Below the pieces are notes generated by a model, which was not told where the DNA came from, ran no database searches, and worked only from the letters and a program-made list of their open reading frames with translations. Shown piece by piece: positions 10,612 through 64,000 of a stretch of 64,000 nucleotides of DNA. Where the stretch lies: the IMG/VR virus record IMGVR_UViG_3300027621_000003, positions 230,915 through 294,914 of that record; one strand, 5' to 3'. Position 1 is the stretch's first letter, and each line of letters opens with the position of its first letter. Position numbers and translations under genes: made by a program.

Positions 10612-10628
10612 TTCGGTATCTTTTGTCA

Positions 10629-10636
10629 TATAAATA
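10629..10636 (-). promoter_or_regulatory. Putative late promoter motif TATTTATA
   Basis: 17 nt upstream of ATG 10611. Confidence 0.55.
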
Positions 10637-32939: not shown

Positions 32940-35150
32940 TTATTCTTGTAATGTTTTTTCAACAACGCTTACTGCCGATAATCCACCTGAAATGATTGTA
33001 TTACAATTATTTAAAGCAATGTAATTAAATGAACCATCTACTTGTACTGTACTTTGGACAGTTGTAGCACAACCAGATATACTAGCATCGGTTATGGTAA
33101 CTTTATTATATACATCAATTGTTAATGTATCTGCGTTTGTAACAGAAACACTTGCCGTTGAATCTGTTACCGTTGTTTCAATATCATTAGGTGAACAATA
33201 AGGTCTTAATGTTGAACTACTTGTTGTACCACCTGATGTTATAGCTATTGGACTACCATTTTTATAAATGGTAATTTCAGTTAAATTATTGTTTCCATCA
33301 CCAGGTTTGTAAAGTTCAAAATTTACATTAATGTCAAACGACATTGCTATTGTTATTCCACTAGGAATATTATTACAATTTAATTCCCAAATTTGATTTT
33401 TAGATTGTATATACGGACTATCAATTTGTGTTTGATTTGTTGTTTGTGTAAATTGTAATGTTGTTGTAACATTTTGATTTAAATTTCCAACAGTAGTATT
33501 TTGTGTTATATATAACCCGGTCACAACATCTTTAACATAAACAGTGTAAACACCAGGATTTAAATCATAGAAATAAGATGTAGTTCCTGTTGTGGTACCA
33601 CTATTAATTGAATATATATAATTACCTGAACCACCGTATGGTTGAATTGCAATTGTTCCATCTGCGGTTGTATCACAAGTGGCTGATGATGTAACTACAG
33701 ACATATTAAGTGGTAAATACGCAGGACAATTACCTGTAACCATGTTCAATGAACTAATCTGACTACTTCCGTTTATAATCCAATTACTTAACGGTGGTAT
33801 TGAAGTCGTATTTGAACTTGGGTAAGCGTCTACTGATAAACCTTGAATTGTCCAACCTGATAATGCCGAGTTACTTAATACCAATATTTCACCCGAACCA
33901 TTTGTTATTGGTGATGAATAAGTTGCCGCTGTCCAAGCGGGTTTACTATTAATTGTTGAATAATAATTAAATTGATATTGGTATTGTTGATTATTAGTTA
34001 ATGTAAATGTTGCACATATTCCTGTGTATGCCACGGCTGTTGGTGATGGTGTTAATGTTGGTGTTAATGTTGGTGTTGGCGTTGGTGTTATTCCAATTAT
34101 TGTACATGTTGTAGATGCTGTAAAATCACCATAATAATCTGTGACAATTGCAGAATATGTTCCAGGTGTTACACCACTAATTGTGGTAGTATCAACAACA
34201 CCATTACTCCAAACTATACTATATGGTGATGTACCACCAGTTATAAACAAACTCATAGTTCCAAAACCACTAACAACAACAGGATTTGTTACACTGCAAA
34301 CCACACCCAATGGAAACAAAGTAATAACATTACACTCATTTTTTACAATAGCTCTTGTTGTTGTAGTTGTTGTATAAGTTGGTGTTGGTGTTAAACCAAA
34401 AGTTTTAGTTGGTGTTGGAGTTGCGGTACGTGTTGGTGTAATACTCGGTGTATTTGTTGGCGTAGGTGTCAATGTGGCTGTAACACTTGGCGTTGGTGTT
34501 GGTGTTGGACACGGTATTGCTGATTTACAAAAAGTACAATTTTGATAAGTTGGGTATTCAAAAGATGATGTTATTGTTGAAGCGGATGTTGTATTAGTTA
34601 ATGAATAACATTTATCATTATAAACAACAGTATTACCAAAAGGATAAACAAAATTTGATGGTATTATATTAAATGTTAATATATCTGTTGAGTCGCAACA
34701 ATTTGTAAATGTAACCGCAGAGTATTGAGTAGTTCCCGTATTTAAATTCAAACATTTGATACAATTTTCATACGTAGTTAATGATGTGTAAACATTATCA
34801 TTTGTTGGTCTACTACTAACATATTCCCAACAATCACCATCATATAAAATAACAGTATTTAGTGCCGGCACAATACTTGCTGGAACAGTTATTATCGCAA
34901 GTTCACTTGACGTACAATTTTGAATTTGAAGTCCAATTAAATTATCAGAAATACAATCATCACAATTACCATAACCATTAAATGTTACATCAGCAACTGG
35001 TATTAAAAAACTTGCAACTTCAGTGTCAATCCAACATAATCCATCATAATAAGCAATATCTCCAGGATTGAAGAATACATCATTATATTGTAATATCTGT
35101 GTTTGATTTATATTATTACAATTACGGAATATGTTAGTTTGAATTGCCAT
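32940..35150 (-). CDS. Virion structural protein with Cys-rich repeats, Thr-Pro linkers and SprB-like repeats
   Basis: Three N-terminal modules ending YxxCxxC, two PTPT tracts, two 'GG..PY.Y.W/S..G..PG.Y.V.V.D' repeats. Confidence 0.7.
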   Translation of the reverse strand: MAIQTNIFRNCNNINQTQILQYNDVFFNPGDIAYYDGLCWIDTEVASFLIPVADVTFNGYGNCDDCISDNLIGLQIQNCTSSELAIITVPASIVPALNTVILYDGDCWEYVSSRPTNDNVYTSLTTYENCIKCLNLNTGTTQYSAVTFTNCCDSTDILTFNIIPSNFVYPFGNTVVYNDKCYSLTNTTSASTITSSFEYPTYQNCTFCKSAIPCPTPTPTPSVTATLTPTPTNTPSITPTRTATPTPTKTFGLTPTPTYTTTTTTRAIVKNECNVITLFPLGVVCSVTNPVVVSGFGTMSLFITGGTSPYSIVWSNGVVDTTTISGVTPGTYSAIVTDYYGDFTASTTCTIIGITPTPTPTLTPTLTPSPTAVAYTGICATFTLTNNQQYQYQFNYYSTINSKPAWTAATYSSPITNGSGEILVLSNSALSGWTIQGLSVDAYPSSNTTSIPPLSNWIINGSSQISSLNMVTGNCPAYLPLNMSVVTSSATCDTTADGTIAIQPYGGSGNYIYSINSGTTTGTTSYFYDLNPGVYTVYVKDVVTGLYITQNTTVGNLNQNVTTTLQFTQTTNQTQIDSPYIQSKNQIWELNCNNIPSGITIAMSFDINVNFELYKPGDGNNNLTEITIYKNGSPIAITSGGTTSSSTLRPYCSPNDIETTVTDSTASVSVTNADTLTIDVYNKVTITDASISGCATTVQSTVQVDGSFNYIALNNCNTIISGGLSAVSVVEKTLQE

Positions 35151-35152
35151 TA

Positions 35153-35362
35153 TTAATTACATTCTGTTATAATACAATCATTTACATCAACAACTTTTAC
35201 ACACAATGAACTTTCTGAATCCAAAGGTGCTGGTACGTCAAAAACATAGGGTGTTGAGCTAATTGTTGCTATATAAACACAATTGTTTACGGAACCGTCA
35301 CAAATATATACGTCATATGGTGATGTTCCTGTTAAAGAGTTTATAGTTACTTGTATTGCCAT
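35153..35362 (-). CDS. Small beta-rich structural protein
   Basis: 69 aa between structural genes; TATTTATA at 35367-35374. Confidence 0.65.
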   Translation of the reverse strand: MAIQVTINSLTGTSPYDVYICDGSVNNCVYIATISSTPYVFDVPAPLDSESSLCVKVVDVNDCIITECN

Positions 35363-35366
35363 GGTA

Positions 35367-35374
35367 TATAAATA
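35367..35374 (-). promoter_or_regulatory. Putative late promoter motif TATTTATA
   Basis: 4 nt upstream of ATG 35362. Confidence 0.55.
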
Positions 35375-35375
35375 T

Positions 35376-37679
35376 TTAATTGGTTGGGGTTGGTGTTGGA
35401 GTTTTAGTTACCGTAGGGGTTGGAGTTTTAGTTACCGTAGGGGTTGGAGTTTTAGTTACCGTAGGTGTTGGAGTTTTAGTTACCGTAGGTGTATTAGTTG
35501 GTGTTGGAGTTACTGGATAATTTTCACATGTTGAACAATCTCCATACCAACTATCAACAACACTACTAGTTGCATTTGGTGATACAGTACTTACACCTAT
35601 ATAAGTGTAACAACTTTGAGTTCCATTTATGGTCATATTATATGCGTAGTTAGTTATTAAATCTACATCAACAAATATATTTGATGGTTCCAAATAATAC
35701 ACATCATTAGTATTACATTCTTGGAATTGGTATGTCTGACCAGGACATACAAATACAGTTTCAACTAAAGTATATGTAACATCACCACTAACAGGTAAAC
35801 CACGGTTTGTTGTTGTAGTTGTAGTTATTCCATTAGTTGTTGTAGTTGTTGTATATGAACTAAAACTGATACTTCCACCCACACCAATACATGGGTTGGC
35901 GGTTGTTGTAGTTGTAGTATAGGCACTAAATGTAACATCTATAGATGTTGCTGAACAAGGAATTGTTGTTGTAGTAGTTGTTGATACATCACAATCAAAA
36001 TAAGCCTCAAAATCAAATATGTTACAAGGATTTGTTGTTGATGTTGTTGTAACACAAGTTCCTGAACTAAATAACTCATCACATAAATCAGGACATATTG
36101 ATGAGTTTGGTATTTTACCGTGAAGAATACAAGAACCGTCTAATGCTGAACTTAAACACCACGAAGTTGTGCCAGTACTATAATATATAAAACCAGTATC
36201 ACCTGTATAATAAACTCTTTCATTATGAGTACCAGCAGAATAATAAGTTCCATCATATAATTCTGTTGTTGGAAAATATGTTAAGACACAATATTCTTCG
36301 ACAGGACATAAATTCCAACCTGCCGATGGTGTTAATGATGGTGTAGGTGTCTGTGTTGGTGTAGGTTGGACTGTGGCTGATGGTGCGGGACATTCACCAA
36401 TTAAAGTTACATAAACACCTTCAGGAGCAATTACCGAATTCTCACAAGCACATAATGATACTGTTGTATTAGGAAGTATAAAAAATTCCCTAAATTGACC
36501 ATAACAATCAATGTGGTCAACGTAAACATCAAGCGAGTTACTATTGAACAACAAATATTCTAAACATGTACAATCCAATACAGGACCTGTTGGTGTTGGT
36601 GTAGGCGTAGGACATGTTGGACAATACCCATCTTCACATGAAGATTGTTCTGTAAAAACAACACCAACACCTGAATAATTTTCACCAATTGATTCGTATG
36701 GTATAACTTCGGCACATCCTGTAAAATCAACACTACTTGATATATAAAACGTTTGACCAACTGTTAGTGTTGATGATATTGTATTAAATCTAAAAATATT
36801 AGTAGCATCACAACAATCTCTAAATGTATAGATATTAAATGCGTAATCTGTAGGTGTTACAGATGGTGTATTGGTATTGGTTGGTGTTATTGATGGTGTA
36901 TTTGTATTTGTTGGTGTTATTGATGGTGTAACTGTTGGTGTTTCAGTATTGGTTGGTGTTACCGTAGGTGTAACTGTTGGTGTTTTGGTTAATGTTGATG
37001 TTACCGTAGGTGTAACTGTTGGTGTTTTGGTTAATGTTGGTGTTACCGTAGGTGTAACTGTTGGTGTTTCAGTATTGGTTGGTGTTACCGTAGGTGTAAC
37101 TGTTGGTGTTTGGGTTAATGTTGGAGTTTGTGTTGGAGTTCCCGAATTTGTATTTGTAGGTGTATTTGTGGGTGTTTCTGTATTAGTAGTAGTTGGAGTT
37201 AAAGTAGGTGTTTCTGACTCAGTAGGAGTTGGAGTTAAAGTAGGTGTTGCAGTATTTGTAGGCGTTACTGTTGGCGTAGGTGTTTTTGACTCAGTAGGAG
37301 TTGGAGTTAAAGTAGGTGTTTCTGTATTAGTGGGTGTTGGTGTCGGTGTGTTTAATATTGGTGTTTCTGTATTAGTAGGCGTTACTGTTGGTGTTTCTGT
37401 ATTAGTAGGCGTTACTGTTGGTGTTTCTGTATTAGTAGGTGTAGGTGTTGGTGTGATTGACCCTAAACATTCTATACATCCAGCGTATGGACTTGATACT
37501 GTTGCAATCTCATCTACTATTGGTAAACTACCAATTCCGGTAGATGTATAACAACCTGATGGCGTACTTCCAGTAAACGTTAAAAAATACGCAAATGGTG
37601 GAGGTGACAGTGGAGTACCACTGTATTCAACATCATACGTTATTAATGTATCACATGATGTAATTAATATTGCTGCCAT
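35376..37679 (-). CDS. Mucin-like Thr-Pro-rich virion protein with Cys-rich modules
   Basis: About 200-aa TPTxTPT tract, poly-Thr runs, three Cys modules, C-terminal (TPTVTKTP)n. Confidence 0.75.
35395..35490 (-). repeat. Four tandem 24-nt coding repeats (TPTVTKTP)
   Basis: Unit GTTGGAGTTTTAGTTACCGTAGG[G/T] on the plus strand, no spacers. Confidence 0.85.
36850..37450 (-). repeat. Thr-Pro low-complexity coding repeat
   Basis: [13 protein letters not shown]-type units. Confidence 0.9.
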
Positions 37680-37704: not shown

Positions 37705-38685
37705 CTATTTTTGAATTATTTTTTTCATTTCATTTATGTATTTGTAAGTTGTTGACTGTTTATCAACATAATCAAAATACTCAATATCTTTTTCCAAAAG
37801 TTTAATCGGATTATTATTAATATAATCACCCTTAAAAAATAGTGTATTTTTAAGGTTGTCAGTTACGCCAGCCATGTGTAATATTGGGTTAGTATAACAA
37901 GTATCAATCTTGTCAGTTGCCCAACAAAAATCAAGTTCTTTTGTAATCCTTGTTTCCCTATTCCACCACCACATATTCCATAATACTGACCACATCTCTG
38001 CGGTCCAAAATTGTATTTCACCTGGTGATATTGGATACTTTCGTTGGAATCTCATCAGTTTGTCATAAAGTCCTGTGGATTCTCTAAATATTTTATACCA
38101 CATCTGCCAATCTTGTTTTTTAAAGACATATTGTGCTCCACCTGAGTTTAATTCATTCTTCTTAACAATACTTGGTTCAACACCAACAATGTCACACATC
38201 TCTCTTAATAGTTGTCCTGAATCTAGTTGGGGATGTTTTTCTTTATACCTACCATCACAATCCATAATGTAATTGAAATCTATATATCCACGAGTATTGG
38301 ACATATAGATATAATCATCATTTATAAGATTGCTGAAATCAGGAAGGTAATTAAATACAATGTCAGAGTCATGTAGAAAAAATAACTCTCCTCTTTTTGG
38401 GTCTTCTTTAATCCATTCATATAATAAATAAGGTTTAATACTTGGTATGTAATGTTTTCTTTCACGGTTGTCTATATACCCATGAATATTTTCTGTATAT
38501 TTTTTTAAATATTTTGCACCATCAGATAACTCGGTTGTTTTATTAACCATTGCAAATAAAACGTGAATATTCTCTTTTGGAATACCCAATTCAATAAAAT
38601 TATTTAAATATACTTCACACTGCCAATGAAAATACGGTACATCTGGTTGTGCCGAAACAAATATAAGTTTATCTTTCCAAGTCAT
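37705..38685 (-). CDS. GT-A glycosyltransferase resembling plant HPAT (GT95) / peptidyl-serine galactosyltransferase (GT96)
   Basis: YFHWQ, YIPSIKPYLLYEW, HDSD (DxD), SGG and WTAEMW occur in the order of the SGT1/HPAT motifs as recalled (YFDWQ, YPAINKP..W, LDAD, GG, WISEMY). Confidence 0.65.
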   Translation of the reverse strand: MTWKDKLIFVSAQPDVPYFHWQCEVYLNNFIELGIPKENIHVLFAMVNKTTELSDGAKYLKKYTENIHGYIDNRERKHYIPSIKPYLLYEWIKEDPKRGELFFLHDSDIVFNYLPDFSNLINDDYIYMSNTRGYIDFNYIMDCDGRYKEKHPQLDSGQLLREMCDIVGVEPSIVKKNELNSGGAQYVFKKQDWQMWYKIFRESTGLYDKLMRFQRKYPISPGEIQFWTAEMWSVLWNMWWWNRETRITKELDFCWATDKIDTCYTNPILHMAGVTDNLKNTLFFKGDYINNNPIKLLEKDIEYFDYVDKQSTTYKYINEMKKIIQK

Positions 38686-38720: not shown

Positions 38721-38725
38721 TAGTG

Positions 38726-38899
38726 ATGAAACTCATTAAAACAATACAAAATTTAGTTGAAGAAGCTGAAAAAGAATATAATAAAGTTCTTGAAAGCACA
38801 ACTAATATGAAAGAAATTGAAAGAGCCGAAAAGAATTATTTTGACTCACTTAAGGTATTGGAAAAATTCAATAGACTTAACGGTTACAAACGTAACTAA
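38726..38899 (+). CDS. Small helical late protein
   Basis: Hand-translated 57 aa: MKLIKTIQNLVEEAEKEYNKVLESTTNMKEIERAEKNYFDSLKVLEKFNRLNGYKRN. Confidence 0.65.
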   Translation: MKLIKTIQNLVEEAEKEYNKVLESTTNMKEIERAEKNYFDSLKVLEKFNRLNGYKRN

Positions 38900-38901
38900 T
38901 C

Positions 38902-39291
38902 TTAAATAACATTTGTATGATTTCTTCCATCGTTCCAATAACTAACATCACCATACCATGTGAATATCTCATCACCTTTCTTTATTTCTCGATGGGAAAT
39001 AAATTGAAATGTTTTGTTTTCAAGGTTTGATATCCAATACGCATTTGCATTTTCGTGATGATTATAAATCCCACCATAACCTAAAGGAAGTACTTGCTCT
39101 TTCCATTCACCACCTTGTGGCCAATTAAATCTATAATCAATTAATAAAGAAGTTACTTCTCCTTTTTCTATTGGTAAAGTTAAGACAGGACATTCTTCAA
39201 ACACTTCGCCTTCCATAATATCTTCTTTTGCAAAGACCCCCCATCCATGAACGGGACTTTTATCAACATATATTTTTGGATTGTATATCAT
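38902..39291 (-). CDS. SET-domain protein (lysine methyltransferase)
   Basis: SPVHGWGVFA, GxGGIYNHHENAN, EIKKGDEIFTWYG. Confidence 0.9.
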   Translation of the reverse strand: MIYNPKIYVDKSPVHGWGVFAKEDIMEGEVFEECPVLTLPIEKGEVTSLLIDYRFNWPQGGEWKEQVLPLGYGGIYNHHENANAYWISNLENKTFQFISHREIKKGDEIFTWYGDVSYWNDGRNHTNVI

Positions 39292-39294
39292 AAC

Positions 39295-40137
39295 TTACTT
39301 TATTGCTTCACAAATTCCACCTTCGGAATAAGTTTGATATCCTTTGTTGTGAAACCAAGTATAAATCTCATCTTTCTTATCTTGGGATAGGTTGTAGTCT
39401 TCAAATATAATAAAATTAGGTAATAAAACTTTTGTCTCATCAATACCCATAATTAATTGGGCATCTAACCCTTCAACATCAAGGTGTAACCAATCAATGT
39501 GTCCATCACATTCATTTAAAATTAAATCTGTGATGCTAATTGAATCTCGTTTTGTTGAGTTAATTTCTTCTGTTTCCCAATGTCTAATAACATTTTCAAC
39601 TACGGTATTTGTATATCCCGCACCGCCTTCAAAAAATTCAACTTCACCACCATTAGGTGTGATTAAATTTTGAATGGTTTTAACCATTGAATTGTTCTTG
39701 TAATTATTTTTTAATTGATTGTATTGGTTATCTGATGCCTCCACTAAAACAACATTACATTCACGTTTTTGAACAATTGGTACCCACTCACCAAACTCAC
39801 CATCGTGAGTTCCAACAACCAATCCCTTTGGGAATTTACCATTAGACAAAATACCCTTGTTAAACATCCATAAAGACTTATAGAAATGATTTCCATGTTC
39901 CATAATATCCCACACTTTTTTATAAACTAATTTATCCTTGATGTCGTATATTTCAACATCATACATTTCGGTATTTGGGAATGTCGCAAACCAATTGTCA
40001 TTCAAATCGGTTGCCCATTGTTCCTCACCACTTACGTGTTTTTTAATTTTTAATCTTAATGGTAGGTTTTTATTATATTTACTAATCTCATCAACATTAA
40101 CTTTAATACCATCTGAATTGTATGTAACTGTAATCAT
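39295..40137 (-). CDS. N-terminal beta module plus FkbM-like methyltransferase
   Basis: VVGTHDG, VLVEAS, IDWLHLDVEGLD, IIFE. Confidence 0.7.
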   Translation of the reverse strand: MITVTYNSDGIKVNVDEISKYNKNLPLRLKIKKHVSGEEQWATDLNDNWFATFPNTEMYDVEIYDIKDKLVYKKVWDIMEHGNHFYKSLWMFNKGILSNGKFPKGLVVGTHDGEFGEWVPIVQKRECNVVLVEASDNQYNQLKNNYKNNSMVKTIQNLITPNGGEVEFFEGGAGYTNTVVENVIRHWETEEINSTKRDSISITDLILNECDGHIDWLHLDVEGLDAQLIMGIDETKVLLPNFIIFEDYNLSQDKKDEIYTWFHNKGYQTYSEGGICEAIK

Positions 40138-40682
40138 TTCTTATGTTTTTCTATAAAAAAATTTATATCTTGACTCCATAAAATCATGGCTTCTTCTTTA
40201 ATTTTATTTTCTTCCCAATCCCACCAAGCAATATCTAATAGGTCTTTAATTTGCTGTTCTGTGAATCGGTATTTTAAATGTTTTGCTGAATTTCCACCAA
40301 CAACTGAATAAGGCTCAACGTCTTTGGTGACTAATGCACCTGCGGCAACAATTGCCCCGTGTCCAATTTTAACTCCTGACATTATTGTTGAGTTTGCACC
40401 AATCCAAACATCATTTCCAACTGTAATATCACCCTTACAAGATGGGTGTCCCATCTCCATGTGCATACTTGCAATCTCAGGAGTAACAAGTCCCCATAAT
40501 TGGGAACTTGTCGTTATCCAATCAGGTCTATGATTTGCATGTAAGAAGAAGTTACAGTCTCTCCCAATTGAGCAGTACTTTCCGACATGGATTTCATATT
40601 CATCACTCCAAGAAATTATGTTAACATTTCGGTCAAAATAAGTTCCTCTGTCGGCTTTCCATAAATGTATATTTTCTATCAT
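40134..40682 (-). CDS. CatB/Vat-family hexapeptide O-acetyltransferase
   Basis: VGKYCSIG, ITVGNDVWIG, VTKDVEPYSVVGGN, IAWWDW. Confidence 0.9.
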   Translation of the reverse strand: MIENIHLWKADRGTYFDRNVNIISWSDEYEIHVGKYCSIGRDCNFFLHANHRPDWITTSSQLWGLVTPEIASMHMEMGHPSCKGDITVGNDVWIGANSTIMSGVKIGHGAIVAAGALVTKDVEPYSVVGGNSAKHLKYRFTEQQIKDLLDIAWWDWEENKIKEEAMILWSQDINFFIEKHKK

Positions 40683-42559
40683 ATTATCTTTAATAAATTG
40701 TTGTAAATTTTTACTCTACTATTAGTTTTAACTATTTCAATAATATAACTTTTATCGGTTAATTCTATATCTGAAATGTAAAATAACCAATATTGTTGTA
40801 AATTTTGATTTGCTAAAACATTAACAATGTTACCATTTAAATCTTTAATTATAAAGTCAACATGTTCGTCAATATGTTTAGTAGTTAAAAAAGAATTTTT
40901 TTCAAAAAAGACTGAATTGTCTTTATAGTAAACTAAAATTTCTTCACAATCAATAACATGATTATTGTAATCATTTTCAATTCTAACATATTGTTCTTCA
41001 TTTTTTAAATTATGAAAACATACTACATCATTTTGGTGTTTTGGCAGTTTAACAAAATCAGAAATACCTGTCATATGAAATGGATGATTCATATCGGTAA
41101 ACTTACTAATATTAATATTTGAAGATTCCTCAATATCACAAAGATGTATTGAATTAGTTAATTTATACTTAGATAGTATAACATTTGCAGAGTCTTCATC
41201 ATGTAATGTAAAAATACCAGGTCTGCTGTCTCTATATTCATCATACATCTGTAATTGTTCTTGGAAGAACCATTTTGATTTATAATCAAATAACATGACA
41301 TTTGTTTTTCTTCTTGGAAAAACACATATCTCAATTCCTGTTGCGTCGGCTAAAATATCAACAGTACTTGTCCATTCTTCACCATCAATAATATTACATA
41401 AATAAAGTTTATCGTGTGAGTGTTGATTAATTAATGGGTAGTTTTTAAGTTGACTGAAATAACTACTAATATCATCTGAAGCAACTGTCATGTAAACATC
41501 ACTATCAATGAATATGAATTTTTTATTTGGTAAAAAATCAATAACATCTAACATTAATCTTGGTTTACAACTAATAATATTTTCATCTCTACCTCTTGAA
41601 TCTTTTTTACCTGGTTCAATGTCAATTCTTTTGAAAATAAATTGTTCACTAGTTAAAAATTTATTGGGAATATTGTAATCAAAATTGATTGAGTAAATAA
41701 CACATTTTCTATTGGAATATTTATTTATTGAGTCCATTAAAAATGGGATTGTTTGTGAGTAATTTTCAGTAAACCCAAACACCCAATAAAAATCTTCAAT
41801 AAAGTTCTTATTAAAGCTACCAAAAATTTGATTTCCTACTTTTTGAAAAATGGTATAATTCTTTTTTATGAAATGATACAATAATTTTTCTTCTCCATTT
41901 ACCAAAAGTTTACCACCACTCCAACAAACATTATATGTATTTTTTCCTCCGTTATTTGTTTCAGTATTCATTGAATACAATATTTTGGTTTTATAGTTTG
42001 TTGTAACAATTTGAGATAATTCTTGTTCCCCATAACCATATATTTCATCCATTAATAATGTTTCATAATACCTTTCAGTCTTCATTAAATCACAAAACTC
42101 TTTAGTATTTTTCATAATTATTAATGGTCCACTTAATCTATTGTGAAAAACTTCATCACCAACTGAGATAAAATCGTAATTATCAATACATTCTAATAAT
42201 GTTTTATTAATACCCCCAAATAAAGTATCAATATCATAAATTCCAACATATTTGTATTTCCCAACATAGTCAGAAAACATTTCAAAATACGATAATTTAA
42301 AATCAATTATTTTTTTTGGGTGATGTATTTTATCAATATTTAAATTGGATGTGGAATTAAACCTATTTAAAAACTCGCCTTCAGTAATATAATTCACATA
42401 AAAATTTGAGTGATTTATATATGAAAAATCATATTCTTTATCATCAGTAAAGAAATAAAAATCAGCACAACAAACAGAACCAATTGTTTCAACATGGTAT
42501 TTAAAATAATCAGGTATTTTTCCTAACCAAATCTCGATTAAAGCAATTTGTTTTTCCAA
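40679..42559 (-). CDS. Two-domain glycosyltransferase-like protein (DUF6625-like plus GT-A) with C-terminal beta module
   Basis: WLGKIPDYF...IDFK...YDIDTLFG; second domain KPRLML...FIDSDV. Confidence 0.6.
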   Translation of the reverse strand: MEKQIALIEIWLGKIPDYFKYHVETIGSVCCADFYFFTDDKEYDFSYINHSNFYVNYITEGEFLNRFNSTSNLNIDKIHHPKKIIDFKLSYFEMFSDYVGKYKYVGIYDIDTLFGGINKTLLECIDNYDFISVGDEVFHNRLSGPLIIMKNTKEFCDLMKTERYYETLLMDEIYGYGEQELSQIVTTNYKTKILYSMNTETNNGGKNTYNVCWSGGKLLVNGEEKLLYHFIKKNYTIFQKVGNQIFGSFNKNFIEDFYWVFGFTENYSQTIPFLMDSINKYSNRKCVIYSINFDYNIPNKFLTSEQFIFKRIDIEPGKKDSRGRDENIISCKPRLMLDVIDFLPNKKFIFIDSDVYMTVASDDISSYFSQLKNYPLINQHSHDKLYLCNIIDGEEWTSTVDILADATGIEICVFPRRKTNVMLFDYKSKWFFQEQLQMYDEYRDSRPGIFTLHDEDSANVILSKYKLTNSIHLCDIEESSNINISKFTDMNHPFHMTGISDFVKLPKHQNDVVCFHNLKNEEQYVRIENDYNNHVIDCEEILVYYKDNSVFFEKNSFLTTKHIDEHVDFIIKDLNGNIVNVLANQNLQQYWLFYISDIELTDKSYIIEIVKTNSRVKIYNNLLKII

Positions 42560-43446
42560 AATTCTATAAAATTATCTATTGTAAGTTTATCTTTTTTTTC
42601 TAATTGTAATAAATTGTCTTTAACTAATCCAATCGTTTGTTCAGCCCACTTAACATCATTCATGCCATAAGCAACCCCACACATTTGAATTGGATTTTTA
42701 ATTCGATATTCTATAGGTGTAATATCTTTATTTGGATTTAATATTATTCCTTTAGCTCCACATAATGCGGCGGCAGTTGTATAATAACTTTTATCATCAA
42801 AAGTTAAAACATATTCGTATTTGTTAAATTCATCTAATAAATAATTTATTTCTTTTTTACCATTATAATGAGGTATTTCTGTAGAACCTAAATTATCTAA
42901 AAACTCTAAACCCCAATCAGGAGTATTTTTATGAATAATGTGTCCAAATCCTTTTCTATTTGAATTATGTGTATTGTAAAATTTACCAAAATTATAATCA
43001 AAAACGGTCAATTGGTGTTGTTTGGTTCCTTCAGGCACTTTAAAGGTACCATAATTAAAAATAACATCATCAACATTAAACGTATCCCACTGATTTTGGT
43101 CAAAATCATGTAATAACCATCTTACATTATGATTAGTATTAAATGGATTACCAAATGTTGTTTGTGGAAAAATAGATATTGTATTATTTAAATTAAATCC
43201 AAATCCTTCCCACATAAATTGATTTCTCCACCCATTTTCAAAAGATTCAATAATTTGAGTTGGTATCACTTCAATATTTTCATGTGGATATTTTGGCTCA
43301 TTAAATATATAAACGTAATGACCTCTTGTTGCTATTTCATACGCTAATTTATGTAACGCAAAAGACGCTCCCTTATTTTCCAAACCAATTGAAATCATTG
43401 TATTAACTATAAAAGTTAACTTGCCCTCGCCACACTTTAATTTCAT
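42538..43446 (-). CDS. GT-B-like glycosyltransferase (WavQ-like)
   Basis: GASFALHKLAYEI, IFPQT..GNP, VRWLL, AALCG; start at the ATGA overlap 43446. Confidence 0.55.
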   Translation of the reverse strand: MKLKCGEGKLTFIVNTMISIGLENKGASFALHKLAYEIATRGHYVYIFNEPKYPHENIEVIPTQIIESFENGWRNQFMWEGFGFNLNNTISIFPQTTFGNPFNTNHNVRWLLHDFDQNQWDTFNVDDVIFNYGTFKVPEGTKQHQLTVFDYNFGKFYNTHNSNRKGFGHIIHKNTPDWGLEFLDNLGSTEIPHYNGKKEINYLLDEFNKYEYVLTFDDKSYYTTAAALCGAKGIILNPNKDITPIEYRIKNPIQMCGVAYGMNDVKWAEQTIGLVKDNLLQLEKKDKLTIDNFIEFWKNKLL

Positions 43447-44030
43447 ATTTTTTCTACAATTACATCCCAATTATTATATTCAAGTATTTTATATTCAAAA
43501 CTTTCAAGTCTTTTAACCGTTTTTTCAACATATTTTGAATTAGTCAATTCATTCGCTTCAAACCATATTTTTTTAGGTAGTGTGTTAGTATTTGAATCCA
43601 AAATATTATTAATAATAACACAATCATGTCCTTCAGTGTCAATCTTTAATAAATCAACACTTTCAACATCATACCTATCAATTAATTTTTCCCATGTTAT
43701 CATTTCACATTCAGTTTGATTTAATAAAAACTCCAAGTTTTTCTCCTTTAATTCACGCTCAGTTGTGATGTGTGGTCGAATAATTGAATTACACCCTCTC
43801 AAATATTCAGATAATTCATATTCGTCAATATCTTCAGGTTTAACCCAAAAAACATTTGTTGTTCCATTTTTGTCACTAATCGCACAATTCACTTTAATTA
43901 CATGACTATTATTTGGTAATCTATTTAGGTAAATTTTTAATGGTTCAATTGATAAGCCAATCTGATTTTCAGTGGTCTGTAATAAAGTATCGAAATCGGA
44001 TGTACCAATTTCTATAAAGTCATATTTCAT
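43443..44030 (-). CDS. FkbM-family methyltransferase
   Basis: FIEIGTSD, IEP, VDLLKIDTEGHD, IWFE. Confidence 0.85.
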   Translation of the reverse strand: MKYDFIEIGTSDFDTLLQTTENQIGLSIEPLKIYLNRLPNNSHVIKVNCAISDKNGTTNVFWVKPEDIDEYELSEYLRGCNSIIRPHITTERELKEKNLEFLLNQTECEMITWEKLIDRYDVESVDLLKIDTEGHDCVIINNILDSNTNTLPKKIWFEANELTNSKYVEKTVKRLESFEYKILEYNNWDVIVEKI

Positions 44031-44052
44031 TTTTAATTATTATTATTTTATG

Positions 44053-44835
44053 TTAATAGTAGGTTAAAATAGTTTTAGATATTTTATCAATAATTTCAAG
44101 ATTATTTAAATAATTGTTTGGTAAATGAAAATCAATATAAGTTTTATCAGATAACAAATCGTAATTAATATCTTTACATTTTTCTTTATTTATTCGTCTT
44201 GGATAGTCCCAAACATTATCAATACCTCTTGTTAATTTAACAATATTAATTTCATTAAGGTTCCTATTTATTTTTTTACCGATATAACATTCGTCCCTAT
44301 GGAACATGGGTATATCATATCCAAAATTAAAATTATAAACTCTTTCACAAAATTCGTTAAAATCACAGTTAATGTCTAAAATTTTAATAAATGTCGAACC
44401 TTTACCTAAAATATAACACATGGGATATCGGTTTAACGCAAACATATTTTGAGTATCTTTTCTGGATAAATCATATGCATCAGATTCATATATCACCAAA
44501 GAATTTTCATCAACATCATTTATTTGTTTAAAAAAATATTCTCTATTAAAAGTCAACATATCAACATCTGACATCATAATATTTTCATCTATAAAATATT
44601 TTGAACCATATAACCTATATAATTGAGATTGGAAACTTGTTGGTATATTAGGTATTGGTTTAATTTTTTTCACAATACCATATTCATCGTGATAAAAATC
44701 TGAATATTCGTCAGTGATATGAAATAATACTGGTGTGATTCCTAAAGTTAATTTACATATTTTAGATGTTAGTTCCCACATTTTTCGATAATCTCCACCA
44801 TTATCACAAGAAAAAATTACTTTATCAATTTTCAT
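44053..44835 (-). CDS. Putative GT-A glycosyltransferase
   Basis: SDVDM DxD motif, YPMCY, IDFH; inside the glycan cluster. Confidence 0.5.
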   Translation of the reverse strand: MKIDKVIFSCDNGGDYRKMWELTSKICKLTLGITPVLFHITDEYSDFYHDEYGIVKKIKPIPNIPTSFQSQLYRLYGSKYFIDENIMMSDVDMLTFNREYFFKQINDVDENSLVIYESDAYDLSRKDTQNMFALNRYPMCYILGKGSTFIKILDINCDFNEFCERVYNFNFGYDIPMFHRDECYIGKKINRNLNEINIVKLTRGIDNVWDYPRRINKEKCKDINYDLLSDKTYIDFHLPNNYLNNLEIIDKISKTILTYY

Positions 44836-44851
44836 ATTAATGTTTAATTAG

Positions 44852-45427
44852 TTATTTTATTATTTTTACAGGACAACCAACATAAACTCCATGTTGTTCA
44901 ATATTTTTAACAACCGCACTATTCATACCAATAGTTGTTAAACTATGTACTGATAATTTTTCACGTATTGACGAATTATTTCCCATATAAACTAAATCAT
45001 AAATGGTAACATTACCTGAAACTATTGCACCTGGCATTGCACTGAAATAAGAACCTATCATACTATCATGTCCAATATGATTACCTCGATTCAAAATTGC
45101 ATGTTTACCAATTTTAATATTTGTGGTCAATATTGAATAGGCACCAATAAAACTCCCCTCACCAATTTCAATATTCTCCATCAACAATGCTGTTGGGTGA
45201 ATAAATGTAAAAAATTGTGTTTCTTTTGGTAGTCTTTGTACGATATCATATCTATCTTTTGAGTCCGCAACAGCAACCATTGCAACGTGTTTTGTTGGGT
45301 CAAATTTTGATAAAGGTAATGTCTCATCATCAACATATTTGTCGTCAACAAACCTAAGTAAATTAACCCCCATTTGGGCCATTACTTCTCTTGCATGTCC
45401 ACCATTACCAATTAAAACTTTTTTCAT
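44852..45427 (-). CDS. NeuD/PglD-family sugar acetyltransferase
   Basis: IGNGGHAREV, FIHPTA, HIGHD, left-handed beta-helix repeats. Confidence 0.9.
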   Translation of the reverse strand: MKKVLIGNGGHAREVMAQMGVNLLRFVDDKYVDDETLPLSKFDPTKHVAMVAVADSKDRYDIVQRLPKETQFFTFIHPTALLMENIEIGEGSFIGAYSILTTNIKIGKHAILNRGNHIGHDSMIGSYFSAMPGAIVSGNVTIYDLVYMGNNSSIREKLSVHSLTTIGMNSAVVKNIEQHGVYVGCPVKIIK

Positions 45428-46068
45428 TTTTTGTATATTTCATATTTTGATAAGTCGGGATAAGGTAATTCTAAATCCGTATTATGTTTTTTTGACCCAT
45501 CTAAATTATAAAATTGGGTCATCATCAATAATCCTCTCGCTGCGAGTTCTGGCATCATATAAAAATTCCAACCCAACATATCAAAATTATCATCATGATA
45601 TGAACACTCTCTTCTTCCACTAAATCTTGCTCTTTTAAACCATAACATTGCCTGATAATCATCGGTAATAATAGCTCCACCTTTACTTAATTTTAAAGTT
45701 TTATATGGACCTGTAAATGAAAGACACATATGAGACTTTGAGATATACATATCAGCAGTAAATCTTAAAGCAGAATCCCAAACATTACTTGGTGATAGTT
45801 GATAAGCCCCCTTAATTGTTTCACCTTCAACAGGTGTAAAATTAACTTTTAATCCCGCATGAATAATTTCACAAGGAACTGATGGATACGTCTTTGATGG
45901 ACAATCTACTTTATCCGATGTTAAACTTTGTTTTATGTTCTTTTCATAATATAATGCTAAAAACAAAGCGTTACTCATATTGTCTAATGCAATTGCGTAA
46001 GGTGCTCCTGTGTAATCACACAATGCTCTTTCAAAATCTTCTGTTATTTTATGTACTCCTTGTGCCAT
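45424..46068 (-). CDS. DegT/DnrJ/EryC1/StrS PLP-dependent sugar aminotransferase (short form)
   Basis: VWDSA, LSFTGPYKTL (catalytic Lys), GGAIITDD, GWNFYM; only 214 aa. Confidence 0.8.
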   Translation of the reverse strand: MAQGVHKITEDFERALCDYTGAPYAIALDNMSNALFLALYYEKNIKQSLTSDKVDCPSKTYPSVPCEIIHAGLKVNFTPVEGETIKGAYQLSPSNVWDSALRFTADMYISKSHMCLSFTGPYKTLKLSKGGAIITDDYQAMLWFKRARFSGRRECSYHDDNFDMLGWNFYMMPELAARGLLMMTQFYNLDGSKKHNTDLELPYPDLSKYEIYKK

Positions 46069-46069
46069 A

Positions 46070-47899
46070 TTAAATTAATTTAAGATATTTTTTAATTTTA
46101 TCAACATCATTGTGTAAAGGTACTAATGACAATATAAGTGATTTTGTAATAATTTTTATCTTCTCAAAATCATCACCAACTTGTGTTTTAAAATACTCCA
46201 ACATCATATTCTTATATGATTTTTTTATTTTTTTATCCATCAATATTTCATCATACCCAATCAAAGATTGGTATATTTTGGCATAATCATAAAGATATAA
46301 CCCATAACAAGTTTTTTTATCCCCAACCATACCTCTAACATCCACAAACTTTATATCCTCACTCTCACTTAACATAATATTACTAAAAACACAATCACCA
46401 TGTATCATAACATTTTTATACCCCTGAGACTCAATTTTAATTAACTCTTTTTCAATTTGTAATACCTGATTATCTGTAATACCATATGATTTATAATCAT
46501 ACATCTTAACCCTTTCCACAAATTTTTTACTTAAGTTTGGATAATCAAAATGAGTTTCATCACTTTCAAGGTTACTATGTAATAATTTAATTTTTTTCAT
46601 CAATAATTGAAGGTGTTCGATGGTTAAAATATTATTAACATACATTGTACTAAAATTGATACCTTGTATCATTTCCAATTCCACACTATTATCAGAATAT
46701 GTTAACATTTTTGGAAATAACTTTTTAATTTCTTCAGTTCCATTATCCACAACCCATTTATAATATTCTATTTCACCTTGTAACTTTATGTCATCGGATT
46801 CTTTAATAAAAGTCTTCCCAATTTTAACTTCATTAAAATGTCTTGGTGTCACATCTTCCATATAAAACCCTAAAGTTTTATTTAAATCTGTCTTTGGGTT
46901 TACCATTAAATCATCAATATAAAAATGAGCGTATGGTTTTCCAAAATAAATTTCATCATAAGGTATGTTATACTTTTCTAAAGTATCTATAGTAATCTTA
47001 CCAATATCTGCAATAACAGCACCCACATTACCACCATGTGTTCTCATTCTTCTAGCAGTATAAATTATAATCGTATGACCCTTTTCTTTAAGTTTTTTTA
47101 AATAATTGATTGTGTCATAAATTGGTTCAACAGTTGTATAATCACCATCAACTTTTGGATATGTTACCAATGTATTATCTAAATCAAAACAAAATCTTTT
47201 CTTAGATATCTCATATGTTTTTGAAAACTGAATAATTTGTTGTGGTGTTCCTAACACATAAAAATCATTAACTTTAATTGGTATAAATTGTTCACCATTT
47301 TCAATCATTTTACTAATAACTTGAGAGGTGTATAATTCTTTTTCAACATCAAAACCTATTTCAAGTATTTGTTTTTTTAACTTTTCAGAATCCTGAAACA
47401 CATAACATCCACTGTTAGCATTATTTGAAATTTTAATCTTTTCTTTAATGTTTGTAATAATATTATCTTTGATTTGAATATACGAATATATTGGATTTGG
47501 GTTTTTTGAATCAAAGTATAAAACTGAATTTCCCTCAATTTTTTGTATTTTTTCTATTATATTCTCATCATACCATGTATCTCCATCTAACACAACAATT
47601 TTACCGTTAATATTAAAATAATCTAATCCTTTTAATATTGTTTCGGAGGCTCCTTTTGTGTCAGGAATTGGAGTTAATTTAATATTTGGGTACTTTGAGT
47701 TAATAATCTCACTAAAATTATAATACTCCAAACATTCATTATATGGGATATATATACTGTCCTGGTCACTAACATCTAAGGAATCTAACAACCAAAATAT
47801 TATTTCTTTACCCAAAACTTTAATCAAAGGTTTTGGCATATGGTACCCATAATCACTGAATCGTTTTCCAATACCGCCTAAAGGAATTAATATATTCAT
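46070..47899 (-). CDS. Three-domain fusion: nucleotidyltransferase + HAD phosphatase + APH/choline-kinase-like kinase
   Basis: GGIGKRF..PKPL; FDLDNTL..YTARRM..GKP..YIDD; IHGDCVFSN..FVDVRG. Confidence 0.8.
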   Translation of the reverse strand: MNILIPLGGIGKRFSDYGYHMPKPLIKVLGKEIIFWLLDSLDVSDQDSIYIPYNECLEYYNFSEIINSKYPNIKLTPIPDTKGASETILKGLDYFNINGKIVVLDGDTWYDENIIEKIQKIEGNSVLYFDSKNPNPIYSYIQIKDNIITNIKEKIKISNNANSGCYVFQDSEKLKKQILEIGFDVEKELYTSQVISKMIENGEQFIPIKVNDFYVLGTPQQIIQFSKTYEISKKRFCFDLDNTLVTYPKVDGDYTTVEPIYDTINYLKKLKEKGHTIIIYTARRMRTHGGNVGAVIADIGKITIDTLEKYNIPYDEIYFGKPYAHFYIDDLMVNPKTDLNKTLGFYMEDVTPRHFNEVKIGKTFIKESDDIKLQGEIEYYKWVVDNGTEEIKKLFPKMLTYSDNSVELEMIQGINFSTMYVNNILTIEHLQLLMKKIKLLHSNLESDETHFDYPNLSKKFVERVKMYDYKSYGITDNQVLQIEKELIKIESQGYKNVMIHGDCVFSNIMLSESEDIKFVDVRGMVGDKKTCYGLYLYDYAKIYQSLIGYDEILMDKKIKKSYKNMMLEYFKTQVGDDFEKIKIITKSLILSLVPLHNDVDKIKKYLKLI

Positions 47900-48978
47900 T
47901 TTAATATAAATCTATCTTTAATTAATTCAAAATTATCATTATTAACTTTTTTAAGGTAAACATTTGAACCGTCTTTATGTGTAACTTTTGACATGAATAT
48001 CATGTTGTTAGTTCTATCAATAATCTCATAACACCAAAACCCTTGTTTTAATTCAACATGTTTATAATATCCCGTATTAGACACAACATCAACCTCCGCC
48101 ATGTCGTAATCCCTATTTAAATAAAAAATAACAAGTTTAGTTGGGTCTGTCTTGTGTCCTTGACCAATATCCAATTTACATATTTTTGGAATATCTTTCC
48201 ATTTGTCTGTCCATTCACCCGAAGATGATATTCGGTCAAATTGTGATTTTGTAAATTTATTTCTAATTGGTCCTTCATATATTTTACCAAAAACATTTTC
48301 ATTTGAATTGTATTGAAATATCATTGATAATACATACTCAGCCCATTTACCCGAATATCCTATCTCACGACATAAGTTCCAATATTCTTCATCATTTTTA
48401 ACAAATGAAAAATCACCTATTGTTTTATTTGAATATCCACAAAAATGAACATCAATTAACGATTGGTGTTGACCCGCCCATTTACCTTCTTTTCTTTTTC
48501 CGTAAATCAAATAATCTTCAGTTTCAAAAGTATTCAAATCATTTAAGACCTCACTAAATTCTTCGTTATCAAATAACATGTCGTATTCAATCCTAAAAAC
48601 TTTTGAATACCCTTCTTTATTTGCCTCTTGAAGTCCGTATATGAATCCATTATATACATTTGCCACATGGTCAGAAACACCAATAAATGGCATCCAATTT
48701 TCTAAAACACCACTTTCAATTTCATAATAAACATATGGTTTATTATATAGATTTGAATTTATAATTTCTTCAGGTGGATAACCAACCATAAAACCATCAA
48801 GATATTCTCTATAAAAATCAACTTGGTCATCAATTCCCCAAGAATTACCAAACTTATTAATTAACATTATTTTACGAGACCCATCCAACTTTCTAAGTTG
48901 TTGAATCAACTCTAAGGTTACATCCGCTTTATCTTTAGATGATAAATAACCATCAATGACATATAATATATTACTCAT
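47896..48978 (-). CDS. Putative glycosyltransferase-like protein with C-terminal beta module
   Basis: RIEYDML DxD-like motif; inside the glycan cluster. Confidence 0.45.
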   Translation of the reverse strand: MSNILYVIDGYLSSKDKADVTLELIQQLRKLDGSRKIMLINKFGNSWGIDDQVDFYREYLDGFMVGYPPEEIINSNLYNKPYVYYEIESGVLENWMPFIGVSDHVANVYNGFIYGLQEANKEGYSKVFRIEYDMLFDNEEFSEVLNDLNTFETEDYLIYGKRKEGKWAGQHQSLIDVHFCGYSNKTIGDFSFVKNDEEYWNLCREIGYSGKWAEYVLSMIFQYNSNENVFGKIYEGPIRNKFTKSQFDRISSSGEWTDKWKDIPKICKLDIGQGHKTDPTKLVIFYLNRDYDMAEVDVVSNTGYYKHVELKQGFWCYEIIDRTNNMIFMSKVTHKDGSNVYLKKVNNDNFELIKDRFILK

Positions 48979-49927
48979 ATTGAAAATTCTGATTTTTTGC
49001 AAAAATGGCTCCTACATTATTTGAATTATGTAAGAAAAATTCTTTAGTAATTTCAAATCCGTTTTGAATTAATTTTTCAGTTATTTGATTTCTAATTTCA
49101 ATAGTATGAAATTCCAAAGATATTTTTTTTATTTTTTTTAGACTGTGTTCTTGAATTGTTTTAAAAATGTCTTGTTCCGCCCCCTCACAATCTAATTTTA
49201 AATAATCAATGTGTGATAAGTTAAATAAATCAAAGAGTTTTTCAATATCTATAGTTAAAACATTTGTTTCTAAATTTATATCTTTACCAATAATTTCATT
49301 AAATTTTTTCAAATGAGAACAAGCACTTATTAAATCAGAATAACAAAATGTCATAACCCCATTTTCATCCGAAATTGCCAAATTATAACAACTAACATTT
49401 TCTAAATTTTTTGTATTTTCTAATAAAGTTATGTAGTTTTTAATATCAGGTTCCAAACAAATTATTTTTTTTGGTTTAAATTGGGTTGCATAAACTGAAA
49501 AAAAACCAATATTAGCACCGACATCAACTACAATATCATTTTCACTAATGTTAACAATTTCATCATAATATACGTTGTCATAAAAAATCTCTTTAAAGGT
49601 ATAAAAATTTAATCGATTACTATAGGAACTTTTAAAAACATTATCGTTAATTATTACCAAAGAAGGTTGATTTCCAAAATCAATTTCTAAGTTAATAACA
49701 CCATCAATACTTTCCGCACGAAGAATAGATTTACCTAAATTTGATAAACAACTTACGGGTGCCGCAATCCAATAAGTACACAACTCATCCATATAGTCAT
49801 ATTTTGATTTATAGATTAATGTATTACTATTAATATCAATTAAAGAAATTTCAACCGAACTATTTTTTGTGTCTTTTACTGAAAAATAAACTTTTTCATT
49901 TTCTATTTTTTTAAAATATAATACCAT
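48971..49927 (-). CDS. N-terminal beta module plus FkbM methyltransferase
   Basis: VDVGANIG, LEP, IDYLKLDCEGAE, LEFH. Confidence 0.88.
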   Translation of the reverse strand: MVLYFKKIENEKVYFSVKDTKNSSVEISLIDINSNTLIYKSKYDYMDELCTYWIAAPVSCLSNLGKSILRAESIDGVINLEIDFGNQPSLVIINDNVFKSSYSNRLNFYTFKEIFYDNVYYDEIVNISENDIVVDVGANIGFFSVYATQFKPKKIICLEPDIKNYITLLENTKNLENVSCYNLAISDENGVMTFCYSDLISACSHLKKFNEIIGKDINLETNVLTIDIEKLFDLFNLSHIDYLKLDCEGAEQDIFKTIQEHSLKKIKKISLEFHTIEIRNQITEKLIQNGFEITKEFFLHNSNNVGAIFAKNQNFQYE

Positions 49928-49955
49928 GATTTTATTTAAAGTTTTAATGTTGTGT

Positions 49956-50687
49956 TTAGTCTTGATTATCTATATGAACTATAACTTGATTATAATATTC
50001 AAGAAAATGTTCATTCCATAAATCCCATTTTACATCAATATTGTCTATTGAATAAACTTGATGATTTGGAAATTCTTTAAGATAGGTATCTCTAAAATGT
50101 CTGAATTCTTCAACATAGTTATGATTCTCAAGTCGTAAATGCCATTCCCCAACAATTTTTTTAACATTATTTTTAATATATCCCATATTATCATCATTGA
50201 ATATATGGTATTCCCCACCTTCACAATCTGTTTTAATAAAATCAATTTTATCAACACCAAACAAATCAACAAACGTTTTGAACGTTATCCCTTCCATTTC
50301 GGTTTCTCCACCAAAAAGTTCATCATTTTTAACAATTGAATTTTTATCGGATATACCCTTATTTATATGGGTCACGGGATTTCCAATAGTATTTTTTACT
50401 AATGTTTTAAATTCTCTATAACTTGGTTCAAAACAAAAAACATGTTTTGGTTTTTTATCTAAAATTGAATATGTAAATGGTCCGACACTCGCACCAATAT
50501 CTAATACTATATCCCCTTCTTTAACTTCAAAGAATTTCTCATAACAACTATCAACATAAATTTCTCTGGTAATAGTGTCTTTATGGAATTGTCCCATTTG
50601 TTTATTATTATCATCCCCAAGTATCCGATATACTTCATTTGTCTCATCCATCCAACCCCAATCAAAATTATCAAGTGTTTTTTTCAT
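49956..50687 (-). CDS. FkbM methyltransferase
   Basis: LDIGASVG, FEP, IDFIKTDCEGGE, GEWH. Confidence 0.88.
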   Translation of the reverse strand: MKKTLDNFDWGWMDETNEVYRILGDDNNKQMGQFHKDTITREIYVDSCYEKFFEVKEGDIVLDIGASVGPFTYSILDKKPKHVFCFEPSYREFKTLVKNTIGNPVTHINKGISDKNSIVKNDELFGGETEMEGITFKTFVDLFGVDKIDFIKTDCEGGEYHIFNDDNMGYIKNNVKKIVGEWHLRLENHNYVEEFRHFRDTYLKEFPNHQVYSIDNIDVKWDLWNEHFLEYYNQVIVHIDNQD

Positions 50688-50751
50688 ATACGTGTTTTTA
50701 TAATTGAAATATAGATTATATATAGTATATTTCAATAAACAAAACACAATT

Positions 50752-63999: not shown

Positions 64000-64000
64000 T

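Follow-up and report, generated by a model that had tools for sequence, protein, structure and literature searches.

A predicted glycosyltransferase of a freshwater jumbo phage belongs to a large unnamed phage family paired with threonine-rich proteins

A gene of a freshwater jumbo phage encodes a predicted sugar-adding enzyme from a large, unnamed phage family which almost always sits beside a virion protein carrying a threonine-rich tract, suggesting that many phages coat their particles with sugars. The likeness of this enzyme to plant cell-wall enzymes is distant and does not amount to family membership.

The gene, its conserved motifs and its genome

The DNA analysed here is a stretch of 64,000 nucleotides (hereafter the window; positions 230,915 to 294,914 of the IMG/VR record IMGVR_UViG_3300027621_000003). 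A preliminary description, made from the sequence alone, had proposed that the open reading frame at 37705–38685 encodes a plant-type hydroxyproline/serine O-glycosyltransferase resembling GT95/GT96, based on five motifs and on the position of the gene immediately upstream of a Thr-Pro-rich structural gene. We confirm the underlying observation: the ORF is present on the minus strand, starts with ATG and encodes 326 aa, and each of the five motifs is found in it. To ascertain whether these motifs are more than chance strings, we aligned the query with 111 representatives of 31–48% identity (alignment A1, 112 sequences) and, independently, 40 bacterial, prophage and phage homologues (alignment A2). 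In both alignments the motifs fall on invariant or nearly invariant columns. YFHWQ (aa 18–22, 38620–38634) lies at the start of the helix spanning residues 17–32, after the first strand (aa 8–14), and its W21 and Q22 are nearly invariant. In YIPSIKPYLLYEW (aa 79–91, 38413–38451), Y79 and P85 are nearly invariant. HDSD (aa 105–108, 38362–38373) contains D106 and D108, which are nearly invariant in A1 and invariant in A2. The SGG motif (aa 181–183) is part of NSGGAQY (aa 180–186, 38128–38148), the most conserved motif of the family, with invariant G183 and Q185 and nearly invariant G182 and A184. In WTAEMW (aa 227–232, 37990–38007), M231 is invariant and W227 and W232 are nearly invariant, and the sequence search itself selected this motif as the family signature, W[CT][AS][DEG]MW. 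A further conserved motif is LHMAGV (aa 269–274, 37864–37881), whose H270 and G273, together with the following K285, are nearly invariant in A1, while their equivalents H249, G252 and K263 are invariant in A2. The order and spacing of the five motifs had been likened to those of Arabidopsis SGT1/HPAT, a likeness that rests on the preliminary description alone.

The gene ends 25 nt before the ORF 35376–37679 (minus strand), and no terminator-like site is found between the two. This ORF encodes a 767-aa Cys-rich modular protein with 26.6% Thr, 11.9% Pro and 126 TP/PT dipeptides and with long (TPTxTP)n and poly-Thr tracts at aa 76–252, 354–367, 439–448 and 722–767, with further poly-Thr runs between aa 545 and 625. 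While the preliminary description called it structural, this is not shown for this phage, as the protein has only unnamed phage relatives and no confident fold, and the ESM Atlas gave no named relative for it. A second Thr-tract protein of 736 aa is encoded further downstream on the same strand (32940–35150), and an equivalent 741-aa protein lies at the same relative position in L001 and L003, two of the related loci.

The window has about 30% G+C and gave no tRNA or Rfam hit. It encodes a sigma-70-type sigma factor (PHROG 351, E=3e-53), SbcC and SbcD, a primase, an exonuclease and a DNA methyltransferase. One of its proteins is 100% identical to a protein encoded on IMG/VR genomes of 232,874 and 294,914 bp, and at least 14 freshwater or lake DNA studies hold about 95% of the sampled words of this region, whereas a near-identity DNA search of cultured phages found nothing. 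The window therefore derives from a cosmopolitan freshwater jumbo bacteriophage. We also considered a giant eukaryotic virus because of the collagen repeats, a SET domain, a P4H-GT fusion and FkbM genes, but rejected this reading on the basis of the sigma factor, SbcCD, the primase, other PHROG hits and the Uroviricota labels. The genes lack Shine-Dalgarno sequences and related contigs carry SprB and Laminin_G_3 proteins, which weakly suggests a Bacteroidota host. RNA-library contigs match the gene exactly (for example 38401–38651), but this is weak support for expression since carry-over of DNA cannot be excluded.

The protein belongs to PHROG 4417 and has a predicted GT-A fold

Direct family assignment failed, as searches of Pfam and NCBIfam returned nothing for the query and PDB sequence searches with the single protein and with the profile returned only noise. 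The protein is, however, a full-length match to PHROG 4417, a family of unknown function (E=7.2e-71, residues 9–323 against profile positions 3–291 of 293). This family is large, with 1303 hits in the 90%-clustered database, all of them unnamed and publicly labelled "hypothetical protein", and 816 clusters at 50% identity, of which 295 have E<=1e-30. It is represented in 75 cultured-phage records, from Enterococcus, Lactobacillus, Staphylococcus, Lactococcus, Clostridium and Chryseobacterium phages, and in many bacterial genomes of Bacteroidota, Bacillota, Actinomycetota and Myxococcota, among others.

We next employed AlphaFold2 to predict the structure and obtained a very confident model (pLDDT 97.7, pTM 0.94) with alternating strands and helices of a GT-A fold. 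HDSD directly follows the strand formed by residues 101–104, the classic position of the DxD motif, by which GT-A enzymes bind the metal and the nucleotide sugar. Foldseek comparison of the model with solved structures retrieved GT-A enzymes, namely the UGGT catalytic domain (GT24, E=5e-7), WbbM, glycogenin and XXYLT1 (GT8), and B3GNT2, with E values from 5e-7 to 1e-4 but TM scores of only 0.35–0.50 and identities of 8–13%. Viral GT8-like proteins match at a similar level. The protein shares with the GT8 and GT24 enzymes the DxD plus C-terminal His arrangement, H270 being a candidate third metal ligand that resembles the C-terminal His motif of GT8 enzymes, and several of these enzymes (glycogenin, UGGT, XXYLT1) act on proteins. 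This similarity is nevertheless at fold level only: Glyco_transf_8 (PF01501) is absent from the Pfam hits of the query at E<=1, from the top 25 of 65 families listed for the 112 members of A1 and from all 14 families listed for A2. The maximum 19-aa hydropathy is 0.83, so there is no transmembrane segment. We conclude that the protein is a predicted soluble, DxD-dependent GT-A glycosyltransferase, for which the retaining mechanism is inferred from its nearest structural neighbours.

The relationship to plant GT95/GT96 enzymes is distant

Since a plant-type enzyme had been proposed, we tested the family for the HPAT domain (PF23452) characteristic of CAZy GT95, a profile search that had also been named beforehand as a check of this proposal. 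The query, the 111 diverse representatives of A1 and the 40 homologues of A2 gave no hit to PF23452 or PF23741 at E<=1 (0 of 152), and the precomputed Pfam annotation, whose accession versions run one ahead of the Pfam copy used in our scans, is empty for the closest 120 relatives. With regard to GT96 (SGT1; PMC4110251), a search restricted to proteins of 753–2396 aa with the domain of the protein P0164 found only bacterial fusion proteins, although this search needs shared 5-residue words and is thus insensitive to distant relatives. No family member longer than about 1270 aa has the domain at its N-terminus. The protein also lacks the type II membrane anchor of the Golgi lumenal enzymes, and the virus infects bacteria, as indicated by its sigma factor.

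The ESM Atlas nevertheless points towards HPAT. Among the 100 nearest named clusters, 22 carry PF23452 in at least 10% of their members (about 10% in some related clusters), making HPAT-domain proteins, including green-algal and haptophyte ones, the nearest named relatives by language-model features and by predicted structure. A haptophyte HPAT/ShK cluster shares 179 of 256 features with the query, and the model of a close relative superposes on Chlorophyta ShKT-HPAT and Pseudomonadota PqqD-HPAT clusters with TM scores of 0.72–0.75 (about 0.74), compared to 0.62 for plant GT8. GT95 is described as related to GT8 (PMC4908140) and predicted to be GT-A-like (PMC8476585), and GT96 as related to GT95 (PMC4908140, PMC8012813). 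A GT-A-like fold related to GT8 is predicted for GT95 and for the present protein alike, the latter with a DxD motif. Hence, the protein would work like, and probably shares distant ancestry with, the HPAT-type enzymes, but it is not a member by any test we could run.

The interpretation given in the preliminary description is thus partly supported: the prediction of a DxD-containing glycosyltransferase, the HPAT-domain proteins as nearest named relatives and the inferred functional tie to Thr-rich proteins encoded next to it hold, whereas membership of GT95/GT96 is not supported. The idea of a plant-type gene in a phage is also misleading, because this is a very large bacterial and phage family and PF23452 itself occurs in Pseudomonadota. 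Across the family the conserved acceptor feature is poly-Thr, often without any Pro, so that hydroxyproline is an unlikely acceptor.

The gene is coupled to threonine tracts of neighbouring proteins

To gain further insights into a possible acceptor, we analyzed the genomic context of the family. Within the window, only 2 of 67 ORFs have at least 7 Thr in any 15 residues, and these are the two large genes immediately downstream on the same strand, with no terminator-like site between them and the GT gene. In 79 related IMG/VR loci (50–58% identity), the downstream neighbour has at least 8 Thr in 15 aa in 50 of 78 cases, compared to 125 of 384 other flanking ORFs (p=3.5e-7). As many flanking genes in these jumbo-phage loci also carry Thr tracts, this enrichment is only about twofold. 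In 80 loci from bacterial genomes of GTDB (31–38% identity), 29 of 37 stand-alone forms follow a same-strand ORF with a T/S run of at least 6, whereas such a run is present in 32 of 508 other ORFs and in 0 of 78 downstream ORFs. The roughly 40 long fusion forms in Bacteroidota and Actinomycetota chromosomes have no such neighbour (0 of 39), and the family may thus have other acceptors too.

The upstream proteins of the stand-alone forms are major head proteins (PHROG 840, E=3e-119; PHROG 10) or major tail/tube proteins (PHROG 88, 6686 and 14018), i.e. at least five unrelated families, each ending in a poly-Thr tail such as TTTTTTKPTTTTTTT. In prophages the gene directly follows the genes of these proteins. 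The same arrangement is found in the phages phiCTP1 and phiFL1A. In the 38.8-kb phage phiFL1A it is the only GT-like gene of the genome and is wedged between the gene of the poly-Thr-tailed tail protein and the tail chaperones.

We then tested this coupling in a controlled manner. A tail-trimmed profile of PHROG-88-type tail proteins retrieved 80 viral loci, 74 of which contain enough downstream sequence. Of these 74, 16 have a poly-T/S tail and all 16 have the GT gene directly downstream, while the other 58 have neither (Fisher p=1.5e-16). On a maximum-likelihood tree of the tail-protein cores the trait needs 9 changes, at least 6 of them on well-supported branches, which reflects at least 6 independent co-gains or co-losses. 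The GT gene goes with the tail in 6 of 6 independent pairs, or 9 of 9 if all branches are counted, although the sign test on the independent pairs gives only p=0.031. The tail and the enzyme therefore behave as one cassette.

Further observations fit a protein-directed role. The domain is repeatedly fused to other GTs (GT2, GT6, GT32+GT2), and in about 10 clusters to PF11397/GT60, a polypeptide GlcNAc-transferase family. Comparison of the 767-aa protein with its orthologue in L001 shows that the Cys-rich globular parts are 71% identical, while the tracts vary and TP repeats and poly-Thr replace each other at the same site, which points to Thr, rather than Pro or Hyp, as the constant element. 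In addition, an adjacent island of about 20 kb (38902–59888) encodes five FkbM methyltransferases, two hexapeptide acyltransferases, a DegT fragment, an NTP-transferase, a GT4+TibC_1st+GT9 fusion, a further GT9-like protein, a GtrB-like GT2, a 2OG-oxygenase+GT2 fusion and a DUF6625 protein. These sugar-synthesis and sugar-modification genes may supply or elaborate the glycan, an association inferred from proximity only.

Discussion

The most economical reading, in which we place moderate confidence, is that the gene encodes a soluble, metal-dependent and probably retaining GT-A glycosyltransferase that would start O-glycosylation of threonine, and perhaps serine, in low-complexity Thr-rich tracts of phage particle proteins encoded next to it. 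In small prophages and siphophages the inferred acceptor is the poly-Thr C-terminal tail of the major capsid or major tail-tube protein, while in this jumbo phage it would be the (TPTxTP)n and poly-Thr linkers of the two Cys-rich modular proteins encoded directly downstream, with the 767-aa protein as the most likely and the 736-aa protein as a second likely acceptor. The enzyme would act in the host cytoplasm with a nucleotide sugar before or during assembly, giving the virion a mucin-like sugar coat. Our analysis shows the predicted fold, the conservation of the DxD and His residues, the size and distribution of the family and its tight genomic coupling to Thr tracts, whereas glycosyltransferase activity, the acceptor and any attachment of a glycan to it, the donor sugar, the stereochemistry and the biological role are inferred, without biochemical or mass-spectrometry evidence for any member. 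It should also be considered that the Thr-tract genes of the window lie downstream rather than upstream, are TP-rich rather than pure poly-Thr and are not shown to encode virion components. A precedent is provided by mycobacteriophages, in which glycans are reported at the C-termini of capsid and tail-tube subunits (Freeman et al. 2023, Cell Host Microbe 31:1216, PMC10527164, as cited in PMC12619734 and PMC12582341). Phage-encoded GTs there lie next to structural genes and the acceptors are C-terminal extensions of these subunits, exactly the arrangement seen for the prophage relatives of this gene. The hosts here are Bacillota, Bacteroidota and freshwater jumbo-phage hosts rather than Actinomycetota, and the inferred acceptor in the window is a multi-domain Cys-rich protein with internal tracts. 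Literature searches on HPAT in phages, on virion glycosylation and on Thr-rich tail proteins found no description of the present family, which carries no name in any source searched.

Other readings appear less likely. A true GT95/GT96 enzyme, transferring arabinofuranose to hydroxyproline or galactose to serine beside hydroxyproline in the TP-rich protein after hydroxylation of the prolines by the 2OG-Fe(II) oxygenase of the phage, could draw on the Atlas neighbours, on the P4H-type oxygenase domain in the window (PF13640, E=2e-18) and on the Thr-Pro repeats of the neighbour. We consider it very unlikely given the absence of PF23452 hits and of a membrane anchor, and given acceptor tracts that are poly-Thr, often without Pro, and interchangeable with TP repeats between orthologues. 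Moreover, the oxygenase lies 19 kb away, is fused to a GT2 and sits near a collagen-like gene, and its hydroxylase domain is confined to the closest relatives. The plant and algal enzymes O-glycosylate extensins, GT95 by transferring L-arabinofuranose from UDP-Araf to hydroxyproline and GT96 by alpha-galactosylation of Ser next to Hyp in Ser-Hyp4 motifs, and, as proposed for this family, act on repetitive low-complexity hydroxy-amino-acid tracts, yet the acceptor inferred here is Thr and not Hyp or Ser next to Hyp. It is also possible, but unlikely, that the enzyme does not initiate on protein but extends a glycan started by another enzyme, or modifies a host surface polymer (teichoic acid, capsule, O-antigen) to alter receptors as serotype-converting prophage GTs do. 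In favour of this, the window holds many other GTs that could act first, including the GT4+TibC_1st+GT9 fusion related to protein heptosyltransferases, the chromosomal fusion forms have no Thr-tract neighbour, and prophage-encoded GT-A enzymes modify wall teichoic acid. However, in small phages the gene is the only GT-like gene and lies inside the head-tail module rather than among lysogeny or moron genes, and its perfect co-occurrence with poly-Thr tails on otherwise orthologous tail proteins is not expected for a host-surface enzyme.

Glycosylation of phage DNA to evade restriction is a remote possibility. Phage GTs commonly act in this way, large phages often hypermodify their DNA (PMC12619734) and the window encodes a DNA methyltransferase, but the gene is not near any base-modification genes, its conserved position is after capsid or tail genes with poly-Thr tails, and its fusion partners are protein- and glycan-directed GTs rather than DNA enzymes. 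Similarly doubtful is a GT-A-fold protein that transfers something other than a simple sugar, such as a sugar-1-phosphate in a Stealth-like phosphoglycosylation, or that is catalytically inactive and serves as an assembly chaperone for Thr-tailed proteins. No donor can be assigned from sequence and two members give Stealth_CR2 matches, but these are far below threshold (E=0.038), and the conservation of the DxD and His residues, nearly invariant or invariant across the 152 sequences, argues for catalysis. More tentatively, and less likely than not on present evidence, PHROG 4417 may be the catalytic half of a mobile two-part cassette, consisting of a poly-Thr tract and its own glycosyltransferase, that has been gained and lost many times and would give capsids, tails and fibre-like proteins of many phages, among them Enterococcus, Staphylococcus and Lactobacillus phages and abundant freshwater jumbo phages, a mucin-like O-glycan coat. 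In this view, the family would in addition be the bacterial and viral sister lineage of the plant and algal extensin glycosyltransferases GT95/GT96.

Glycosylation of virion proteins has so far been shown mainly in mycobacteriophages. If this family does what its genomic context implies, sugar-coated phage particles are common and would occur in prophages and phages of Enterococcus, Staphylococcus, Lactobacillus, Clostridium and Bacteroidota as well as in a jumbo phage found in lakes worldwide. This bears on phage immunogenicity and clearance in therapy, on particle stability and adhesion, and on the annotation of a family of 816 clusters that are currently all "hypothetical". It would also offer a simple, portable pair of acceptor tag and enzyme for glyco-engineering, and it provides a bacterial and viral context for the origin of the plant extensin-glycosylating enzymes.

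Genes flanking the glycosyltransferase gene

Directly upstream of the GT region, a 129-aa SET-domain protein (PF00856, E=2e-12; 38902-39291, minus strand) is encoded, a putative protein lysine methyltransferase that is unusual in a phage. A small 58-aa helical ORF (38723-38899, plus strand) lies on the opposite strand just upstream of the GT gene. Since it is 95% identical in the related contig L001 (9786-9959), whose GT is only 79% identical, it is a conserved small gene of unknown role transcribed divergently from the GT gene. The long antisense ORFs at 36871-37551 and 35283-35534 (both plus strand) consist of VGV and WSFSYRR repeats that mirror the Thr-Pro repeat coding sequence and are almost certainly not genes. 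Elsewhere in the window, the phage encodes a leucine-rich-repeat protein and its own sigma-70-type sigma factor (9253-10629 and 20301-21101, both minus strand).

Occurrence of the GT domain in other genomes

Bacteroidota and Actinomycetota chromosomes encode proteins of 865-1687 aa (P0164 and P0270-P0276, from loci L116, L089, L090 and others) that join this domain to a GT60 polypeptide GlcNAc-transferase domain, and some also carry a protein O-fucosyltransferase domain and F5/8 type C lectin domains. These multi-GT proteins have no Thr-tract neighbour. A homologue with 54% identity, next to a poly-Thr protein, sits on a short contig (L087, 5.3 kb) binned into a Candidatus Woesearchaeota MAG; the contig is probably phage sequence mis-binned into this archaeal genome.

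Further sugar-modifying enzymes encoded in the window

The region 38902-50747 is a dense sugar-modification island that holds five FkbM-type methyltransferases, two hexapeptide acyltransferases, an NTP-transferase fused to a kinase-like domain, a DUF6625 protein and a short DegT aminotransferase fragment, which covers only profile positions 26-98 of 360 and is possibly truncated.

Further along, a 620-aa fusion of a P4H-type 2OG-Fe(II) oxygenase (PF13640, E=2e-18) with a GT2 domain (56773-58635, minus strand) lies near a collagen-repeat protein ending in a Peptidase_S74 chaperone domain (62035-63714, minus strand), the latter being fibre-like. This arrangement recalls the collagen hydroxylase/glycosyltransferase of Mimivirus. 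The hydroxylase domain occurs only in the closest relatives, while the GT2 and C-terminal part has relatives on giant-virus MAG contigs (GVMAG). The G+C content jumps to 50.6% at 62001-64000 from about 30% elsewhere, coinciding with the collagen Gly-X-Y repeat coding region.

A 779-aa protein (50704-53043, plus strand) combines GT4, a TibC N-terminal domain and a GT9 heptosyltransferase domain, and is followed by a further GT9-like gene (53040-53936, plus strand). As TibC-type enzymes heptosylate autotransporter proteins, the 779-aa protein is a second candidate protein glycosyltransferase.
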